A stretch of DNA of 64,000 nt, from assembly GCA_009103225.1 (NCBI GenBank), contig RHPI01002402.1, positions 372,001-436,000 of the forward strand, written 5' to 3'. The DNA comes from Chlorokybus atmophyticus. Its lineage: Eukaryota; Plantae; Mesostigma and Chlorokybus algae. The notes under the pieces are model-generated. The model did not search any database. It had not been told where the DNA came from and saw nothing but the letters and a program-made list of their open reading frames with translations. Positions 122 to 42,753 of this stretch are shown here, piece by piece (position 1 is the stretch's first letter; the number at the start of each line of letters is the position of its first letter). Position numbers and translations under genes: made by a program.

Positions 122-6638
<6,517 letters not shown>

Positions 6639-11023: not shown

Positions 11024-14000
11024 ATGGGAGCGACGAGGAAGCTGCAGGGGGAGATCGACCGCGTGCTCAAGAAGGTTCAGGAAGGCGTTGAGGTCTTCGA
11101 CAGCATATGGAACAAGGTATGGTCGAGGGAAGTGCGTCTTTGTCGTGTAGCGACATAAGGAAGGCTGCGTCTTGAATGGGAGATCTGCGTGCACATGGCA
11201 TTGGTAGCATAGAGCGGTTGACAATGGTCTAACTGCGCTGCGTGTGACGTTTACATTACGCTAGACAACAATTGTTCGTTGTCGGAGTTTGCCTTGTAGA
11301 ACTGGGCGTCATACATGCCGGTCTGACTTTGAGCAATCTGCTCGTACACAGCGGGTGTATGTGGTTAGGTGTCATGTTTGCGGAGTGTATTGGTGCACAA
11401 ATGGCGCCATTGTGTTCAGTTGAGGCATTATCCGTCATTGTTGTTGAAAAGCTTGCTGTTAGGTCTACGACACTGAGAATGCCAACCAGAAGGAGAAGTT
11501 TGAGGCGGATCTGAAAAAAGAAATCAAGAAGCTTCAGCGGTATCGAGATCAGATAAAGACATGGATTGCTTCAAGCGACATCAAAGACAAGAAACAGTTG
11601 ATGGATGCTCGCAAGATGATAGAGCGGGAAATGGAACGGTTCAAAGTACGCACTCGTTTGCATGTACTCTGCACTGCAAATATTGCTCACGCAGTACATT
11701 GTATCAAGTGCTGTTGCAATAGGTATGTGAGAAAGAGACCAAAACCAAAGCGTTTTCAAAAGAAGGGCTTGGTCAACAGCCTCGAACAGACCCTAGAGAA
11801 AAAGCCCGCAATGATGCCCGCGAGTGGGTGAATAGGACTGTAGCTGAGTTGGTGACGCAAAATGATGCCTTTGAGGCTGAGATAGAAGGGCTTGCAGTGA
11901 AGAAAGGCAAAACGCGACCTCCAAGGTTGATACACTTGGAAGAGTCGCTCGCAAGGCACCGAGGTCATGTTACCAGACTGGAACAGGTACCCATTCGCTC
12001 AACCTTGCCAGACTTCAGTTGCTGTGCTTTTGGTACTTAGAGCATTTGCATACTGTTCCGCTCAACACAGCTCTGTTGGCGCAGCAGCATAAAACATATC
12101 TTTTTGGTACACAGGTTTTGCGGTTGCTCGACAATGAGGAGTTGAACCCTGAAGATGTACAGGAAGTGCGAGACATGGTGGATGATTACGTGGAGCGTAA
12201 TCAAGAGGACTTTGACGAGTTTGACAATGTTGATGAGATGTACAACTCGTTACCAATGGACAAGTTGGACACGGTTGACATCTCAGACACGATAGTGCGA
12301 ACTGCGACAACCAAGGAGAGAGAAAAGGCTGTGGTAAGGCTTGCTACTGGTGCCCTGGATCCGCCTTTGTCTACAGCACCGCTTGCACCACGATGGCATG
12401 CACTCGAACATCTAGTACCCATGTTGCGCACCCTTGCAGACTGCCAAGGATGCCACGGCGCCACCCAAACCTCCGCTGCCCTCAGCAACCGCTGCAAAGT
12501 TACAACTACCAACGGCTGCGAGCAAGGAGCCACCACCTCCCTCACCTCACTCGAGCGCTGCACACAGTGACGGCGACAGCACTACAAATGCTGCTCCTGC
12601 GGGCAGCGATGCCATCATCAAGCCACTGCCTCCAGGACTCCTTTCTAGCCAACCACCCATCGGTTTTAAGGCGGCAGCGAGTGCTCCGCCTCCCTCTGCA
12701 CCTCCTGTGGCAGCAGCTGGTCGAGGTAACTACCAGAGTTTACATCAAACAAAGCTTGGCTGAGTGCACCTGCCTGCTGCTGTCATAACAGACACAAGAT
12801 ACCTCCGCCTTGTACTGTTGTCCTGCAGACAGACTTCACTGATCACCAAGTTGACGCAGGTCGACCAGCTGTTCCTGCAACACCTGCGGCTGTGGCAGAT
12901 AGGCGACCTGCTGCTGGAAAGGATACCCCCCAGCCTGTGGGTGCGCTGTTGGGCGCCTTGCCCCGCGGTCCGCCTCCAGGTATACCTCCTCGCCCAAGCG
13001 CAGCTATTCCCACCCAGCCAATGCCGACCACAATGGCAACAGCAGTAAGCAGTGGGAGCAGCACGGAACTTATGAGGGCACCTAGTGCAGTGACTGCGAG
13101 TCAACCTGCGGTGTCGGCAAATATGGCCGCCAAGCCTGTGGAATCTGATAGGAAAAGCCCTGTTGCACCAGGCCCTGCCCCGCCACCTTCGCCCGTGCGA
13201 AGCATGTCACCGAGCCTGGGCATCGAGCGCTTGAATGACAGTGTCCTGCCTAGCACTGAGACCAGCAGCACCCAACCGGCGGCCGCAAGCAGCGGGCCTG
13301 GCATGATCGGAGGTCGCATGTACAATGTAGCCATGAACAATCAGGCCCGACCTCAAGGCTGGATGTTCCAGCAAAGCGCCCAACCAGAGTCGCTCTACCA
13401 CGTACAGCATGATCTGTCCCGGGTGACAGCTCGCCAGGAGATACCTCCAGACCAGAAGAGTCGCTTCTTGTCAAGGTTGCAGGCAGTGCAGCAAGGTGGC
13501 GTGTTGGGTATGACCGGCCAAAGCGCGCTGGGAATGGCTGGCACTCTTTCAGCACAGCAGCAGCACTCAGCACCTGGGCAGCCTCAACATCACCAAGTGC
13601 AGCCGGCAAGCTTAGGTACCATAGGTCGAGCCGACTCCAGTGGTCTCAATCAGGAGTCTGCAGCTGTTGGCGACATGGGAGACGACAGTGGAGTCATCCA
13701 GACTGCCATGGGGGAGATGATGCGCATCTTTCCTGGCTTGTCCGACGATGACGTCAAGAATGCTGATACATTTGATGTTGCGGTATGTGTGACACCGCTG
13801 GTTGCTGCGTAAAAAAGACTTGTTTGTGTGACTGATTGTGCATTATGTGCTCTCAGGTAGGTGGCCCGGGAACGCTCGCTGAGCTCAGCCAACTTTCATT
13901 TCAGACAGATAGGCCCCCGTCTCAGTCAGGGCAACCCAATCAGCATCAGCAGCAACAGCAACAGGTACAGGCGTCATCTTTGCAGATGCAGCAGCAACCA

Positions 14001-14762
14001 CAGCTACCTCAACAACAGATGCAGCATCAGCTCTCCAAGCAGCAACAGCCTTCATCTCAGCTGCAACCCTTGCAGGAACCGGCCATGCAACTGCAGGCGC
14101 CTTCCCACTTGCAAACCCCTCAGCCTGGCATGCAGGCCCAGCAGTGGCCTCCCAAGCTTGAGAGCATGGATGACATGCCGGCGCTGCCAGACCACGTGGC
14201 CAACCTGCACATGCTGGAAGCGGCTTACCGGTACATTCCACTTCCCATCGACTCCGAACGACCTAAAGCCTACACGCCTCGCAACCCCGCACACGTGCCT
14301 TCCAGCTACCCCTCTGTGCCATCCGCGATGTTGGACAACCCGGCGTTGTTTGAGCGGTTTGACACGGACACGCTGTTCTTCTGCTTCTATTACCAGCAAG
14401 GCACCTACCAGCAGTACTTGGCTGCATGTGAATTGAAGAAACAGTCCTGGCGCTACCACAAGAAGTATAACACGTGGTTTCAGCGGCACGAGGAGCCCAA
14501 GGTCACCACAGACGAGTATGAACAAGGGACATACGTGTACTTCGACTTCCATATTGTACATGACGACTACCAGACAGGCTGGTATGTTGTGCTTGCCCTT
14601 GCTTCTCTGCGCTTCAGCATATTCCCAGACAAGAAGGTGTAGCAGGAGTTGTCACAACATTGCATGGTCATACGCTGAGTCTTTATGCGTTGCAGGTGCC
14701 AGCGCATCAAGACGGAGTTCACGTTTGAATACAAGTACTTGGAAGACGAGCTGGTGGTGTGA
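11024..14762 (+). CDS. NOT3: CCR4-NOT subunit NOT3/NOT5, multi-exon
   Basis: [50 protein letters not shown], long Pro/Gln linker and a NOT box ([39 protein letters not shown]...[10 protein letters not shown]). Confidence 0.96.
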
Positions 14763-28437: not shown

Positions 28438-31400
28438 TCAGACTGCTTTGGCTGGCATGTCCTTTACAGCGCGGACCGCGCAGAGGTTGGTGAGAACTGC
28501 CCGGCGCGTGTTGGCCTCGTATGCCTCTCTGTCGCACTTGAGGGATGCTGCGGCGACCGTACCCTCGCCAGAGCTCGCAGGTTCAGATGATGACTCATGG
28601 TAACCTTGCAGCACCGACAGCATGCGCTCCTCCACCGTCCCGCGCATCGCCAGAGTTTCAACCATGACAGCCTGCTTCGCACCCATGCGATGTGCTCGAC
28701 TGATCACCTAGAGGAAAGCACAGCACAAGTTCAGGTTTAGCAAGCTACAGGACGTCATAGCATAATGTAATTGGAACATGATAGTAAGTCTTTTGACTTA
28801 ACGGTGTCAAGACTGTTGCAGCAACACAATGTATGCAGCCCGATGATGCATACCTGATCTTCCAAACTGCGATCCCATATAGGTTCCATCAAGTAGACAT
28901 ACGTGACGAAACTCAGGTCGAAACCTAAAGCTCCCACCTGCGCGTTGCATGCATTAAGGGGCTGTACATGTTGATGCACTACCACACAGCAACTCTTTCA
29001 CATGCATGGCACAAAAACGCACATGTCCAAACCAGCAGTTCTGCCAATACCTGATCCATCAACAAGATGTTGCAGCAAGGGTCATGCTCAAACGTCGCAA
29101 GCCCTTTCTTCTTGTCCAACTTCGTGAGCTGGCTATGCAGGATGCTGAACTGCATTTGTCGGTCCTTCAACAGCTCCACGATCAGATGCAAGTGCTGCAA
29201 GAATTGGGAGAAGACAATGACCTTGTGGCTTTGCCCTGCGTGATTGATACTGGTCAGCATGAGCGTGTTGGTGTACAATTGCGAAAAGACCATGTTGCCC
29301 CTGCAGAGCGAACGCACCAGAGTGTGATATTTGACTCTGTATGACATCCAAGCGCTGCAACAAATAGTCCACCTTTGTGCTAGCAGTAGACTGCCAATCA
29401 GCATGCCATGCCTGCAGAGGAACAGTGCATGGAGCACACCGCATTGCGCTGCATGAATGAGCGCAAATGACCATGACTCACACTCACAGCCACATACCGC
29501 CTGCGTGTAGGACGGCTGCCACTCAATCAACTCCACCGGCACGGGCCATTTCGGATTCGAGTTCTCCTGGGTCTTCTTCATCTCCATCGCGTAAGGCACT
29601 CTGCAACTTGCAAGCGCACAGTGCTCCTGCAGGCATTGACAAAAGAGTCACCACACAAATGTCTAATGCTCAAGGGTAGGAACGAGGTATCAGAACCATG
29701 ATGGTGTTTTCTGGAAGTGCCGACTGTCGGCTTCATCTCATGTCATACATCATGGTAGCACAGCAATGAGTTGGTACCTTGTCGGTAGCACAACAGTCAA
29801 GGCAAAGTACGTGAGCACAAGGTGTGACTACAGGGAGACGGGACCACTGCTTGCATTGCAAGCACTCCCCACCATTCCTGACTGCATCCCTTATGGTGTC
29901 GTGCTCCTCAGCACTGAGGCCAGGAAGCCTTTCTGTCAGCTTGTCAATAGTCTCATCCTGCAAAGCAATTCATGTCAGATGAATTTCTCGCCCGATAGGC
30001 ACTGGCGGCGCAACATACCACCTCAACTTAGCCAACGACAGCTGTTACGTACCAGTTCCCACTCAAACACTTGCACGTTGATGTGGCCGGCCACACAAGA
30101 CGCCAGGCGGACGTTGAAGAGCATTTCACGGCACAACTTGAGTTTCTTTGAGTTGAGTAGGGACTCAATGTGGTCGGGATCGTTCCAGTCAGCAAGCAAC
30201 AAATTCCTCTTCACAATCTCTACTTGCTGGTTGTAAGAAGCTGCATGCTGCCTGCCAAAGTCCAGCAATCGCACAGTGCGCATGCAAGGCGGGATGGACA
30301 TGATGTCCGCCTTGCGTGCACATATTACACGATCTTGCAGCACCTGTACAACATGCAACACACAGTAAGCACTTATGTCACAGCCATACAAGAAATTCAA
30401 CTACAGCCAAAGCATACATGATCACACGCTTATTTCCCCACACTCGCTGACTTGTGCACCTGCTTGAGGCGCACGATGCCGTCCATATTGCGGGCTTCAA
30501 TTGGCTTTTGAATGGCTGTCACCCACAGATTGCTATCATTGCCGTACAACTCCTCGCGTAGGAACCTAAGCAACGGCTGTAAACAACTGGTTAGATCCAT
30601 CGCATAGACGTTACATGCCGCGCATGTGAGCGCGCAGCGGGAACAATGGCATCACCGGTAGGGAGCGAACCATGCTGACCTGCAGATGGGCTGATTGAGA
30701 AGAAGGAGTGTTAGGTGTAGGTGTGCCAGTCATAACCCAGCGCCTGTCGCAACGCAGGCTGCAGGCCATCTGCAGCTTATTTGTCATAGCCAGTGATGCG
30801 CCTAGTGTGTGTCCTTCATCTAAAATGACCCGAAGCCAATGCACTCGCAGCAACGGACTCTGCTCTCGCTCAGTCCACTCCATAGACAGCTTGCTGAATG
30901 TAGTCAAAACAATGTCATAGTCCCACGCGAGCTCGTGTACCTTAGGTGCGCACTCGCCCGTATCAAGTATGCACACTCGCAGCGCAAATGCCGCAGTGTG
31001 CCTTTGAATCTGAGCTCGCCAGTGCGTAATCAGCGTGCTGGGCACCACAACCAAGGTCGCTCTTGATAGATATATGGTGCTCACGCTTGGAGACCAGAGT
31101 TTGACACGCGTGGCGCACAACGCCTGCTGCAATGCTTCCTTATCAAGCATCACATCACGAAGCTGCTCTGGTAGCCTCCAGCAATGCACATCTGCATCGT
31201 CAGATGTGGACGAGTCAACTGCAGCCGCTGAGTCTGCGGCTTCCAGACCCAAGTCGCGAAAGAAGTTTATGTACGCTGAAGAGGTGCGGCAAATGAAGGG
31301 GACAATGAAGCCGTGTCTACTCGCCAGTGTCTCCTCTGTTTGGTCGAGAAGCCAGTGAACAGCCATAGCGTCACGGCTTTCAGTGAACCTGAAGCGCTGA

Positions 31401-34002
31401 CGGAGCAGGGATTTGAAGTAGTTGATGTTCTGCACCAGTAGTAGCACCAGCAGTTAGCACAGCTGCAATCCGCTGGCCTATTACTTATCAAACAATCAGT
31501 AATTATGGGTTACCAGCAAGCCCAGTGATGCGCATGCTAACATGCTTGTGCCAATATAAGGGAACCAAACATCGGCAACAACATGAAAGATGACAGCCCT
31601 GTCTTGAACATGCATGTCATGCACCACAAAGTTTACCTTAGCGGCGCCCTGTGGGTCACCAACAGCAACATATCCCAGAGGAACAGGCGAGCCATCTTGC
31701 AAGCCGGATGCCACACAGCTTCCATTCATGTTGACCGCACATGTGCAGATGTCACTGACAACCTGCACACCATCTGCGTGCAGTCAATGAGTCACTACCC
31801 GCTGTTGCACTCAGCATAGCAAACGAGCAAGAAGCGCATACACCTGATATTTGATTACCTCGCATGCAACTTTTACAGGTAGCCAATTGAGGACCTACTG
31901 ACACTTTGTGAACTGGCTTTGGCATGGGCAGTTCCTGCTGGAACTTAAGTTGCACAGCACATTTTCTAGGAGTGCTGGACCGCGCACGCTTGATCTGAGG
32001 CGGGGTGGCAGTAATGGTAGGTGACTGAACTGTTGTGGGAGAACTGGCGACATCAGCAGAATCACCACTGAGTCGTGAGCGCTTGCGAACCTGCATGTCC
32101 GGCGTAGTTACAAAGCCGGAGCTGTCTTTGGGGGCAGCAAAGTGCCTGCGTGGAGAGCCGTCCGTGTTCAATGCAGGCTGCCCACGTCTTGGCGAGCTGC
32201 GCCCTTCAGACGCAACTGGCGACGACCCCGCTAAGACGTGATAGCAAGCAGCGCTCTCTCCTCGCTGCGGGCAGTAGCTCACGTCTACACCAGGAGGCGG
32301 TTCAGCGATACAACCCTTCGTCTTCAGGATCAAAGCCAACCCTGTGATGGTCTTGCCAAGTCCAGGCTCGTCGCAGAAAAGCCCACCACGAAAGTCTCCC
32401 ACCTGCGGCGGTATCTCTGTGGTGAGACAGCCGTTGACCTTGTTCAGGTAGTATGGCAGGCCGTCTGCTGTGACGACTTCTTCATACAGCGGGTGCTGCC
32501 GCTTTTCATGGTTTCGTTCACGCTTGAGCATCCATGCAACCTGTGCCAAACGCAATGCCATCATACCGCGCACCTTAATGGTCACATGCTTGAGGTGGTA
32601 ATGGCACATATGACACCAGCAGCAGGTTAAACTGCCATTGTACTACACACATTGACAGCAGCAACTTACTGCAATACGCTGATGAGGGTGCAGCTTGAGC
32701 AGCATGCCAGGCACAATCGCAGCTGAAAGCGAACGGAACTGCTTGCATGCAGCTCCAGCAGCTCGCAAGTCCCTTGCACCAAGCCTGTCCACATGTGTAC
32801 GTCACTACTGTATCAAGCCAAAAGCAAATCACTACGCATTGCATCACATGTGATGTGCACTCAAAATCACCATTCTGAAGTTACCTGCTCATAATGAGCT
32901 GCAAAACGTCTGCAGGCAAGTCTGAGAGACCCGCTTTATCAGATGGTTCCTCCTCCCTGCACGAGGGCACACTGGCAGAGTCGTCCCGCAAGCAGCAGGG
33001 CAAGCTCCGGAAGAGTGCCGGTAAGCTGAATTGCTGTTTCTGCTCTGCTTCCGAAACAGCAACGTGCTGCTTGCAACCCAATACGCCACATGTTCCTACG
33101 CTCGGCAAGTCTGCTGAGGGTGCGCCCGCCGGTGACGGCGGCTGAAGGTGGCTGAACACAAAAGCCGCTGCCGGACTTGGCTTCCAATTGTCGTGGCCTT
33201 CCCATAGCGAACATGGTATGTACACATAGACCACAACTACTACCAATGTCTCTTGGGGTGAATGCCTCTCAAACACATACTTCACAATGACTCTGTCTTT
33301 GGTCTTCAGCCTGCAATGCACCGATAACTGTGGATGCCTGCTTGTCGGCATGCCACACTTTAAGGACAGGCTGCCAGCTCAACGGCTTAACATCTAAAGC
33401 AATGTCCCCAAGCTGAGGACTGGTCCTAAATTTGATTGCTAACATGCTACCTTGCTAACATGGCTTGCTAGATTACAGCAGCACAAGAGCAGGATCTCAC
33501 AGCAATGCAAACGCGCTCAACTCCAACTGTGACCCCTGATAAGCGTGTGTTCCTCACATTCGATGACTTGTGCTGTGCACCGCATTATCCCCAACCCGAC
33601 TAAGCCTTGATGTGACCACAATTGACCCGACTAGCATGAAGCGGTTCAGCGTTGCACAGCCAAGCACCGAGCGGCCAAACACCATACAAGCAGAGATACT
33701 CACCTATACAAGTAATTTAGGATGGAGTCCCCACCACCGCTGCCTGAGAAGCCATTGGCCGGCACCTCACTGAACCGACAGGATAGGCCTTCAAGCAGAG
33801 TCTGCTGCCCGTTGCGCTTAAGCTGAAGCGGGGCGCCAGTGGCTTCTTCATTGACGCTTCCATCCGCTTTCAGCAACAACCTCAGGCATCCGGCCAGCCT
33901 GTGGTGCGGCAGGTGCATGTCTTCCGCCACCTCCATCGCCGCTGCCGCCGCCGGAGCAGCAGGCGCGTCACTCATTCGTGCCACCAGATTCATTCCGTTC
34001 AT
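28438..34002 (-). CDS. F-box + SNF2 helicase + RING protein (At3g54460-like), multi-exon
   Basis: HRLAGCL N-terminus, VYVYIPCSLW, F-box LSDLPADVLQLIMSR, motif I LFCDEPGLGKTIT, ATLVVVPSTLITHW, motif II VILDEGH, motif III RWVMTGTP, RING CLQCKQWSRLPVVTPCAHVLCLDC, KVIVFSQF and ISRAHRMG. Start ATG uncertain. Confidence 0.9.
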
Positions 34003-38800: not shown

Positions 38801-39551
38801 GACAGTACGAGACAACATGTCCACAAGCATGGCACAGCAAAATTGTGACGCATTGGTCCACAGCGTCTACGACACTGTCATGAAAACCAGCCAACTCGTG
38901 GACTTAGCAAGCCTAACCTAAAAGTCCTGGTACCTACCTGAGGCAGTTGCAACCCTTCATAAGAGGTGTGGCAATACATCACACCAGTGGATGTCAAGTA
39001 AGACAATGCATGGGCGGACAACACACAATGACGCGCAAGGTTCAGGTGCATGGTTTAAATGGTGTAGCTGAGCAACATGTATCCTGATGCTTGTTTAAAA
39101 CCGTGTGAGAATGTTAGACGTTTGTCACCTCAGCGGCTGAGGCTGTCAGCTTTCTGAAAACCTGCACAGTGTTCTTCAGCATGGAACTGGGTAATGCTGG
39201 AAGTCTGCATGCATCTTGAGTCATTAGCACATGCACACACTAGCGCCCACACAAGCACGCGCAAACACCATGAACGACTGTTGGGACCGATCGAGAGTTA
39301 GTAAGGAGATAGTCACCCGCATTTAGCTTGCCATGCCATGTTGCACAAAGTACAGCACTTGCATGCAGCACAGAAAAGTCCTACGACATGTATAATACAT
39401 CAAGGTATGACAGTTTTCAGATGATGATGCTAAGTAAGCAGTTTGCACATCAATACATGGTTACAGGACATGTGTACGAAGAACAAGGAACAAACTTGAC
39501 AAACTCTGACAACGTTTGCTATACGCGTCTGTATCAGAAGATGCGTCCTGG

Positions 39552-41503
39552 TCAACTTGGTTGAGCCGCATCGATGAATTCCTTTATCTCCCTCACTAGC
39601 TGCTTTCGCACGCTCGGCGTGTTGTTGTTCCACTCGTCCAACAGCGTGGTGAGTATGTTGCGCTGGAGCAGAATGTTGTCTTGTGCGCAGAGTGCATCCA
39701 TGACAATGGCGTCCCACTCGTTTGGGCGATGACCCCATAAGCCGAGGCGATCGCCGACAAGTCCGTGTACGCGCGTGGTGAGCCCAAACCAGCTGTCCCA
39801 TGAGTTGAGCAGATGCAAAATCAAATTTAACACCACCTCCTGTGCTTGACTTCGCTGCAAGGCAGCGCTGCGCAACACGAGCTTCCTCGTCTTTGATGAA
39901 GAGGATGGAGTGCTGCTTACATTCACACGCGCTTCATTAGATATGTCATCATCAATGTGCATCACATCTCTAATTAGTTTTGCCAGCTTCCGCTTGGTTT
40001 TGCGCAGATACAGGGCTTTCCAGAAAAACGCAACGGTCACTACGAGGCCTGTGAAGGAAACGCCTAATGGTGGAATGAGGATCTTGAAGATCAGGTCCTG
40101 TCCAGTTCGTGGTGTAAGGAACACATTCCCACACAAGACAATGACATGCGGTCATAACTTGAGCAAGCTGTTGGTTGGTACCTTCTTGCTCTCCTGCTTG
40201 GCTGCCTACACACATACAAGTTAATACGCCTCAGTTAGCAATGTCTGCTTACACAGCTGGGGGCTTGATATTCACTTGGACTCCAACCTAGGCGTTGCTT
40301 TGCTTACCTTCACAACTGGTCAAGGAGAAGCTGTACTCAGGCTGGCAGCCTTCAGAGCAGTGTAGTGACGAGTTACCACAAAATCCAAAAGAAGAGCAAC
40401 ACGGAAACCCTGCGCGCGAAGCAAATGATCAGCTTCTGCATGCTGGCCCACATGTTACACAAACAGTTTGCCACAACACCTCAGACCTCAGAGCCCATGC
40501 ACCTGCAACAAAGCAACGAGCATCGATGCTCGCGCCGCAATTAGGAACTGCGCAACACACAAAGACAAGCAGTGAGCACGCAGTTTGCTGCTGATGTATG
40601 TGTGCATACTTCCCTGCGAGTGGGCGCATGTGCGTGCCAGACAACAACACACCTTGCCAGCATCGACCACTCACCTCCTGCTGGAGTTGGGGCTAGTGCT
40701 GGCGCTGATGCTGGTGCTAGCGCTGCAACTGCGCAAGCAGAACCAATGCTGTACTGCGATTGGCACCCGATGCCGCAATGGTCAGCAGTGCTGCCGCAAA
40801 AGTTATTTGGCGAACAGCAGGGATATTCTGCAAGGAAGGTACCACTGGTCAGCTCAATTGGCAAGGCAAACCAAAACACAAAAAAACACGTGTCCACAAG
40901 CCTGTGCAAGACCGCAAGTGAGACCGCCGCAATTGTGTGAGCACGGTCATGCCCCTGGTTCTTACCAGAGTTCTTGCAGCTGCCAGAAGGTTGTCCGCAA
41001 GCGCCAGTTGTGTTCACCGCAGCTGCCGATGTCCACACAGGTTGGCATTGCCGTCAGGAGACAAACCAGATAGCTAATTGCTGTCAGGGAAGTGTCAAAT
41101 ACACTTACGTGGTGAGGATGTTAAAGTGCAAGCAGAGCCGAAGCTATACCCTGCTTGGCACCCGTTGCCGCAGTAGTCAGCAGTGCTGCCGCGATAGTTG
41201 TTTTGCGAGCAGCAAGGGCTCACTGCAAGGGAGACAGAGGTAAGATGGGACATTTCATTCATTCAAGCACTCAATACCCCTGTTGTTTTCGAGTGGACAT
41301 CTCTCAGAGCTGATACCAAGTGCTATGTTGTGCTTCATGTACAGTGGCTTACCAGGGTCGATGCAGCTTCCATCACCTTGTCCACAGCCTCCTGTATTGC
41401 CTTGCGCTTGAACAGCCGATAGGTACAGAGAGCACAGAAACAACACCGGCAGGAACGCTGTGGTGAAGGCAGCCTCACTCACATGCATCTTTCCACCACC
41501 CAT
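39552..41503 (-). CDS. Receptor-like type I membrane protein: signal peptide, 3x hevein/ChtBD1 domains, TM helix, ~150-aa cytoplasmic tail (~404 aa)
   Basis: Proposed exons 41503-41353, 41222-41109, 41022-40966, 40827-40675, 40547-40503, 40409-40308, 40205-40159 and 40097-39552, all GT-AG and totalling 1215 nt in frame. Domains: CGQGDGSCIDPVSPCCSQNNYRGSTADYCGNGCQ, CGQPSGSCKNSEYPCCSPNNFCGSTADHCGIGCQ, CGASIDARCFVAGFPCCSSFGFCGNSSLHCSEGCQ. TM ILIPPLGVSFTGLVVTVAFFW is followed by RKTKRK. The last (61-nt) intron is the least certain. Confidence 0.8.
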
Positions 41504-42753
41504 CAGCTCACCATGCACTTAACAAACCAGCAAACAGGCGCAATTCAAGGCAGTCCAGCCTACCTCAGCCCTATTACATCCTGACTGTCACCTGCTAGCA
41601 ACTGCTACCTGCTCCGACGCTCCAGAACCTTCACCTCAAAGGTAAAGCTTGCACTAAGCTGGAACTTCCAGAGCTAGCTTCTGTTTGTTGCTGCGCAATT
41701 AACAACCCGACGCAAAAACACCTAGCTTGCATCAGTCGCATCAGCACCTGATGTGACATGAGTCGTATCATAGTTCAAGTCCAGATGTCACACCGGTGTA
41801 GACACAATCCCAATCCCCACCTGTGCCGACACTGTGTGACAACATCCTAGACAGTGGTTGGTGTTTCCAGCCATTTAACGGCGCAGGCGGCCACCAAGCG
41901 ATGCAGACAGCTGGACAGTCCTCTCGCTACGTGTCAGCACGGCCCTGGTGTGCAGCTCTGATTGGCTCCAACCCATCACTGCTGCATGTCGTACACTCCT
42001 TGAACAGAGTGACCACCACCCATGCAGGAAGGTGAACGGTTGCACTTGATGTCTTCTCTTCGTCGCTGCATCGATGAGACTCCAACAGGGCCTCCCGTGT
42101 ATACAGCGCTGATTGGCTGTACTGCATCACCGCTGCATGTCGTCACTTGTTGGATACACAGTAACCTTACCGGTGCGTAGCTGAACGCTTGCGCTTGGTT
42201 GTCGCTGCGTTGGTGAGTCTCCACCGGGGCCAGCAGCTCTCCCGGCTATGCGTAGTGACAGAGGTTGTATAAGTGTGTGCATCCCCCCCCATNNNNNNNN
42301 NNNNNNNNNNNNNNNNNNNNNNNNNNNNNNNNNNNNNNNNNNNNNNNNNNNNNNNNNNNNNNNNNNNNNNNNNNNNNNNNNNNNNNNNNNNNNNNNNNNN
42401 NNNNNNNNNNNNNNNNNNNNNNNNNNNNNNNNNNNNNNNNNNNNNNNNNNNNNNNNNNNNNNNNNNNNNNNNNNNNNNNNNNNNCGCCCCCCTGTGTCAA
42501 ATCTGTTTCCAATCCGTTCAGATTGTTATCCCCTTGGCTTGGGATGATCACCTGAACGGTTGCCACACACCTGCGCGCACAGCAGTGTTAGATGAATGTT
42601 GTTATTACGTCGTTGTGACTAACTACTTGCCTTGACGACGTAGTAGAACACGCTGGTGTATTGCACCAGCTATTCTATTGGCATATATAACCCGCTGCAT
42701 CCTATGGTGTACTTCACACCGGTATACTTTACACACTTAGCTGGGCGGAGGTC

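Follow-up and report, generated by a model that had tools for sequence, protein, structure and literature searches.

A predicted membrane-anchored three-hevein protein of Chlorokybus and the frame-breaking splicing of its main transcript

Chlorokybus, together with Mesostigma, represents the streptophyte lineage farthest from land plants. In a stretch of Chlorokybus atmophyticus DNA (the window, 64 kb in full), an initial annotation made from the letters alone described a gene for a receptor-like protein with a signal peptide, three hevein domains, an Ala/Pro stalk, a transmembrane (TM) helix and a non-kinase tail, and proposed a different receptor architecture for sensing glycans or fungi in an algal lineage. 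The locus therefore raises two questions, namely whether such a protein is made and whether it may be called a new kind of receptor. We found that the locus is an expressed, spliced, minus-strand gene, and we analysed its exons, its RNA, its encoded domains and its relatives.

The neighbours of the gene are ordinary nuclear genes. They encode the second propeller of WDR35 (1409-2299, plus strand), the C-terminal domain of NOT2/3/5 (13836-14642, plus strand) and an SNF2-family helicase with SNF2-rel_dom and Helicase_C (28979-32609, minus strand). Between 52000 and 54300 the GC content drops to 35%, and both strands carry overlapping open reading frames (ORFs), five in all and 250-370 aa long (one of them, on the plus strand, is 52696-53802). 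The longest ORF of this region matched no Pfam family, and the region could represent a repeat or inserted foreign DNA.

Gene model and hevein repeats

The frame-keeping model of the gene consists of eight exons, as the initial annotation had it, running from the start ATG at 41503 to the stop TGA at 39552. All introns are GT-AG and 84-138 nt long, and the 1,173 nt of exons contain no stop codon and no frameshift or indel. A second in-frame ATG is present at 41488, and the product is 390-395 aa long depending on the start. It begins with a hydrophobic leader, which is followed by three Cys-rich repeats, then by a hydrophobic helix and finally by a long tail. Exon 1 (41353..41503; MGGGKMHV..., starting at 41503 or 41488) encodes the leader and the N-terminal half of hevein 1 (GGCGQGDGSCIDP), and ends at the donor CTG/GTAAGC. 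The C-terminal half of hevein 1 is encoded by exon 2 (41109..41222), a linker and the N-terminal half of hevein 2 by exon 3 (40966..41022), and the C-terminal half of hevein 2 with an Ala/Pro-rich linker by exon 4 (40675..40827). Exon 5, in its frame-keeping form of 45 nt, ends at 40503 with the donor CAG/GTGCAT. Exon 6 (40308..40409) encodes the C-terminal half of hevein 3 (FPCCSSFGFCGNSSLHCSEGCQ..), exon 7 starts at 40201 in the initial annotation and is 20 nt long, and exon 8 (39552..40097) encodes the TM helix (about 40020-40082), a basic cluster, the tail and the stop codon (TGA 39554-39552). The repeat-encoding exons 2-6 are all of symmetric phase 1-1, the pattern expected of duplicated extracellular modules. 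A phase-1 intron interrupts each of the repeats, always in the codon that lies three residues ahead of the CC motif (V-S-P-CC, E-Y-P-CC and G-F-P-CC, respectively).

The same protein is already public as a prediction (P0001; EukProt EP00898 Chlorokybus atmophyticus, JGI Chlat1 model Chrsp66S07242, 404 aa). The public model equals that of the initial annotation save for exon 7, which runs from 40205 to 40159 (47 nt), using an upstream acceptor and a further donor, CAA/GTTATG, between 40160 and 40159; the frame is kept, and the tblastn match of the public protein ends at 40159. A phmmer search with the last exon against 1.84 billion representative sequences gave one true match, the public protein, at 100% identity. 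Exact look-ups of the public protein and of the ORF following the TM helix found no record, and tblastn with the public protein against the 64-kb window found no paralogues.

The three hevein domains of the initial annotation are borne out by Pfam. PF00187 (Chitin_bind_1) matched the public protein in three stretches with 49.4 bits, above the gathering score of 27.8. When exons 2, 4 and 6 were translated and searched one by one, they scored 23.5, 27.3 and 28.5 bits, corresponding to the C-terminal halves of repeats 1, 2 and 3 (the match of exon 2 spans profile positions 16-36), which makes hevein 3 the top-scoring repeat in this per-exon search. PF00187 was the only family found on the public protein; the GH19 or Barwin domain that follows hevein in chitinases of class I/IV or in proteins of the PR-4 type is absent.

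Hevein 2 and hevein 3 have all eight Cys of the domain. Hevein 1 has seven, with Arg in place of the fifth Cys (..NNYRGST..; CGC versus TGC). The sugar-binding positions, which we take to be S19, W21, W23 and Y30 as in hevein itself, are partly kept: in an alignment with pokeweed lectin they read S/N/Y/Y in domain 1, S/N/F/H in domain 2 and S/F/F/H in domain 3. The first aromatic residue of the sugar site, W21, is thus replaced by N in two of the three domains (1 and 2). The Ala/Pro-rich stretch (AVAALAPASAPALAPTPAG) is at the end of exon 4 and links hevein 2 to hevein 3. It is therefore not the stalk that the initial annotation made of it. Only about nine residues separate hevein 3 from the membrane helix in the model.

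Splice junctions in RNA

We compared the gene model with contigs from four sequencing runs. Two runs, X1 (2021) and X2 (2013), come from two studies of the same organism and are RNA-like, and X4 is genomic DNA. That X1 and X2 are RNA is a guess, but a spliced form with seven GT-AG joints would be hard to explain otherwise. Both contain 0.53 of the words of the stretch, which is the exonic share. In each run there is one spliced contig that agrees with the genome at every base over ~2 kb and carries seven GT-AG joints. As Logan contigs retain the dominant path only, minor isoforms escape them, and a productive isoform could reach nearly half of the transcripts at each splice site.

In the X1 and X2 contigs, five of the seven introns (1-4 and 7) agree with the model to the base. 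Intron 1 (41352-41223) is confirmed by contigs of X1, X2 and X3, and both junctions of exon 2 and those of exon 4 are likewise found in RNA contigs. The other two introns depart from the model. Intron 5 in RNA is 40486-40410; its donor, GAG/GTCTGA, lies between 40487 and 40486, 16 nt downstream of the frame-keeping donor between 40503 and 40502. Exon 5 in RNA is accordingly 61 nt long (40487..40547; joint 40408/40486 in X1 and X2). The acceptor of intron 6 in RNA lies between 40206 and 40205, 4 nt upstream of the acceptor of the model between 40202 and 40201, and the resulting exon 7 of 24 nt (40182..40205; joints 40204/40307 and 40096/40181) is the sole form observed. The frame-keeping junctions, whether those of the initial annotation or those of the public model, are absent from the contigs of all four runs. 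A third donor for intron 5, 23 nt downstream, is out of frame, and no AG is available for an alternative acceptor of exon 6. Because the position of intron 5 is homologous to those of the introns in repeats 1 and 2, we regard the donor between 40503 and 40502 as the evolved one.

Whichever ATG is used, translation of the observed mRNA changes frame after ..CFVAG, continues with AWALRVSVLLFFWILW and reaches TAA 40375-40373 within exon 6, which is read out of frame as VSVLLFFWILW. The product is 185-190 aa long and contains about 2.4 hevein domains. In silico, 390 aa were obtained only when both unobserved sites were combined; the frame-keeping donor of intron 5 together with the observed exon 7 gave a 252-aa secreted protein without the TM helix. 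The initial annotation supposed that the hevein exons are joined to the TM exon in transcripts. Indeed, they are on one contig molecule in both X1 and X2, but in different frames and with the stop codon in exon 6. This stop is premature and is followed by two introns, which should make the mRNA a target of nonsense-mediated decay, an odd property for the main form. We also considered whether the frameshifted C-terminus (..AGAWALRVSVLLFFWILW) could be a glycosylphosphatidylinositol (GPI) signal; it is too short for that, and probably is an accident of shifted Cys, Phe and Gly codons.

Several features were noted at the 5′ end of the gene. A minor contig joint in X2 skips 41458-41563 (GT..AG, minus strand), an alternative 5′ intron that takes away the two candidate start codons together with the initial half of the signal peptide. 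An upstream ORF of three codons (ATG GTG AGC TGA; 41504-41515, minus strand) has a stop codon that overlaps the first candidate start (TGATG). The RNA contig of X1 extends 549 nt beyond 41650, which implies a leader of 700 nt or more, unless the contig fuses two transcripts. Further upstream, about 440 and 590 nt from the ATG, there are two copies of a 50-nt direct repeat (41943-41992 and 42094-42143; 78% identical, 151 nt apart), each with CTGATTGGCT, an inverted CCAAT box; they are possible promoter elements.

Membrane helix and tail

The strongest hydrophobic segment of the model is ILIPPLGVSFTGLVVTVAFFW, with a Kyte-Doolittle value of 2.02, and it is followed by the basic cluster KALYLRKTKRK. 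The N-terminal leader is signal-peptide-like and, with a value of 1.89, is among the two strongest hydrophobic segments. Hydropathy therefore predicts a type I single-pass pattern (leader peak 1.89, ILIPPLGVSFTGLVVTVAF peak 2.02, positive-inside flank), in agreement with the signal peptide, the TM helix and the basic stop-transfer sequence of the initial annotation.

We asked whether the helix and the tail are coding. Stop trinucleotides are scarce in the genome (3.5%): the 64 kb contain 79 ORFs of at least 130 aa, many of which overlap on both strands, and ORFs run across verified introns (for example, 40541-41038 on the minus strand and 40585-41073 on the plus strand). Open stretches of at least 190 codons cover 7.4% of six-frame positions. 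Because stop trinucleotides are so rare, ORF length by itself is weak coding evidence here. A codon model trained solely on exons that Pfam verifies in other genes of the window gave exon 8 a log-likelihood of +58.7 nats in the frame of the tail and of -36 and -34 nats in the other two frames; introns and flanks, used as controls, scored from -17 to 0 nats. The tail frame was positive in all six 30-codon blocks, the TM block included. Furthermore, the codon-position composition of exon 8 is like that of real exons, with a GC3 of 62%, and Markov shuffling of exon 8 gave p = 0.006. The end of the RNA contig, near 39442, lies some 110 nt past the stop codon of the tail. The codon signature and the end of the contig after this stop together argue that translation in frame with the upstream exons includes the TM helix and the tail, or did so until very recently. 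The codon signature of exon 8, the symmetric phase 1-1 exons and an intron position that is homologous among the three repeats support the evolved coding design proposed in the initial annotation, with its signal peptide, its three hevein domains, a single TM helix and a tail without a kinase.

The tail is about 155 aa long, close to the ~150 residues first estimated, and no Pfam family, kinase or other, was found in it at E ≤ 1. A phmmer search of 1.84 billion representatives found no homologues of the tail; besides the public protein itself, it returned two low-complexity repeat proteins. A feature-based protein atlas gave nothing usable for either the tail or the whole protein. Single-sequence AlphaFold2 predicted an all-helical tail (pLDDT 61.5, pTM 0.57). 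Comparison of this model with known folds gave no match above noise: the best E in Foldseek against the PDB was 0.43, which is not significant, the best Z in the wide VIA search was 6.9, and TM in the structure atlas did not exceed 0.48. CARD chains (six-helix death folds) of NOD1 and NLRC4 aligned to residues 60-155 of the model at Z 5.5-5.7, which is within noise for helical models; the model itself is of low confidence, and the CARD matches are at most a lead. As the tail has no Pfam family, homologue or significant fold match, there is no basis to call it a signalling domain, and the words 'receptor' and 'fungal sensing' of the initial annotation are unsupported.

Relatives and competing readings

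Searches with the whole protein, with the ectodomain region and with residues 1-178 retrieved fungal multi-hevein proteins only, and no Chlorokybus paralogue, orthologue or RNA-derived ORF. The database proteins retrieved with the ectodomain were solely fungal secreted proteins of the WSC/multi-hevein kind, namely P0004 (683 aa), P0005 of Ophiobolus and P0006 of Funneliformis. P0004 is 40% identical over 87% of the Chlorokybus ectodomain, the likeness being confined to the hevein repeats. In contrast to the Chlorokybus model, the fungal proteins occur in a fungal context (SLATT_fungal neighbour), and have eight repeats and Ser/Pro linkers but neither TM helix nor tail.

The closest solved structures are pokeweed lectin-C and lectin-D (1ULK, 1ULN and 1UHA; E = 8.5e-10), with exon 4 aligning to lectin-C 1ULK. 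Tandem ChtBD1 domains, the eight-Cys pattern and the CCSxxGxCGxxxxxC core are shared with the pokeweed lectins, Urtica dioica agglutinin (UDA) and wheat germ agglutinin. These lectins, unlike the Chlorokybus model, are soluble, with neither TM helix nor cytoplasmic tail. The model also differs from multi-hevein lectins by the N at the first aromatic binding residue of domains 1 and 2 and by the Cys missing from domain 1. The truncated product of the observed mRNA, on the other hand, would resemble the two-domain secreted lectins UDA and PL-D.

Hevein domains coupled to kinases have been catalogued before: hevein(2x)- and hevein(4x)-protein kinases in Marchantia polymorpha, and a hevein/jacalin/protein kinase in Chlamydomonas (Van Holle & Van Damme 2019, PMC6362431, Suppl. 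Table 3). According to the same survey, architectures that combine a kinase or GH domain with more than two hevein domains are found in ferns, Chlorophyta or Marchantiaceae (PMC6362431). The Marchantia and Chlamydomonas proteins, which are known by domain scan and are uncharacterised, share with the Chlorokybus model extracellular hevein repeats coupled through the membrane to an intracellular part, but they carry a protein kinase, which the Chlorokybus tail lacks. The class of architecture is thus not without precedent: hevein-kinase proteins were already catalogued (PMC6362431), and the Chlorokybus protein itself was already a public prediction. Chlorokybus is credited with 11 receptor-like kinases (PMC10868138). 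A literature search found no paper containing both 'Chlorokybus' and 'hevein'.

Land plants possess kinase-less receptor-like proteins for chitin, CEBiP/LYM, which have LysM domains and are GPI-anchored. By analogy, the Chlorokybus protein would share with them a chitin-binding surface ectodomain, the lack of its own kinase and the need for a partner in order to signal. They differ in having LysM instead of hevein and a GPI anchor instead of a TM helix with a 155-aa tail, and there is no sequence relationship between them.

How, then, can a gene with an intact membrane-anchored design have a main mRNA that leaves its frame? We favour, with a probability of about one half, a minor productive membrane-anchored isoform beside a dominant truncated or unproductive transcript; the protein would be a membrane-anchored hevein lectin by design and, at best, a minor product. 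Read in the evolved frame, the gene would encode a type I membrane-anchored lectin with three ChtBD1 domains predicted to bind chitin or GlcNAc, and an orphan, helical cytoplasmic tail of ~155 aa. The main mRNA would end after two complete hevein domains and half of the third, and its product, if stable, would be a secreted two-hevein lectin. The membrane form would come only from the minority of transcripts that make both alternative splice choices. We infer the sugar binding, the topology and the existence of this productive minor isoform; the domains, the coding signature and the splice junctions were observed directly.

It is unlikely that the gene has recently been inactivated, with drift of splice sites and the Cys-to-Arg change in domain 1 leaving an unproductive relic of a transcript and no functional full-length protein. 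Two independent frame-breaking junctions do dominate in two RNA data sets, a single TGC-to-CGC change leaves an unpaired Cys in domain 1, and, with no relatives of the tail or of the protein as a whole, nothing points to long-term retention. However, the exons contain no stop or frameshift over 1,173 nt, the codon signature of exon 8 is undiminished and hevein 3 scores best of the repeats. Neutral decay should presumably have produced more exonic lesions than two lesions of splice choice.

It is also doubtful that the full-length protein is the main product and a surface sensor of chitin/GlcNAc glycans, in which case the contigs would reflect the culture, regulated unproductive splicing or a choice of the assembly. 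The intact ORF, the strong coding signature of exon 8, the helix with its positive-inside cluster and the short 3′ UTR after the stop of the tail are consistent with such a product, as are the hevein-ectodomain receptor kinases of Marchantia and Chlamydomonas; by U1 complementarity, moreover, the donor CAG/GTGCAT is not weaker than the observed GAG/GTCTGA. Yet neither frame-keeping junction is in the contigs of the four runs, and two separate minority choices would be required in one molecule. The tail, furthermore, has no signalling domain, homologue or significant fold match, and two of the three domains have N for W21, the first aromatic of the sugar site in hevein numbering.

A more daring proposal, which we consider improbable, is that the two tandem alternative splice sites, with spacings of 16 nt and 4 nt, let the gene switch between a secreted two-hevein lectin and a membrane-bound three-hevein receptor-like protein with a new helical cytoplasmic domain. 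Finally, it is very improbable that the protein shaped by evolution is the truncated product of 185-190 aa and that the helix and tail lie in a long 3′ UTR whose frame is open by chance. Long ORFs are indeed common in this genome (stop trinucleotides 3.5%; stretches of at least 190 codons 7.4%), and exon 8 has a second frame that stays open over 161 codons. However, the frame of the tail scores +58.7 nats against about -35 in the other frames and at most 0 in introns and flanks, shuffling gives p = 0.006, and the frame of exon 6 that the observed mRNA leaves unused still specifies an intact half of a hevein domain.

Since both the public model and the initial annotation chose frame-keeping splice sites, and the RNA differs from them, the database protein is not the product of the main transcript. 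It should be treated with caution, as a frame-preserving prediction unmatched by the main RNA. If the splice sites were in fact a switch, the alga could exchange a soluble defence for sensing at its surface, for instance when it meets fungi, and an early, kinase-independent design of glycan sensing would be placed at the base of the streptophytes. Surface lectins of Chlorokybus bear on the origin of glycan and chitin perception in plants; the minor membrane-anchored form, if made, would be a non-LysM, non-kinase design beside the catalogued hevein-kinases of Marchantia.
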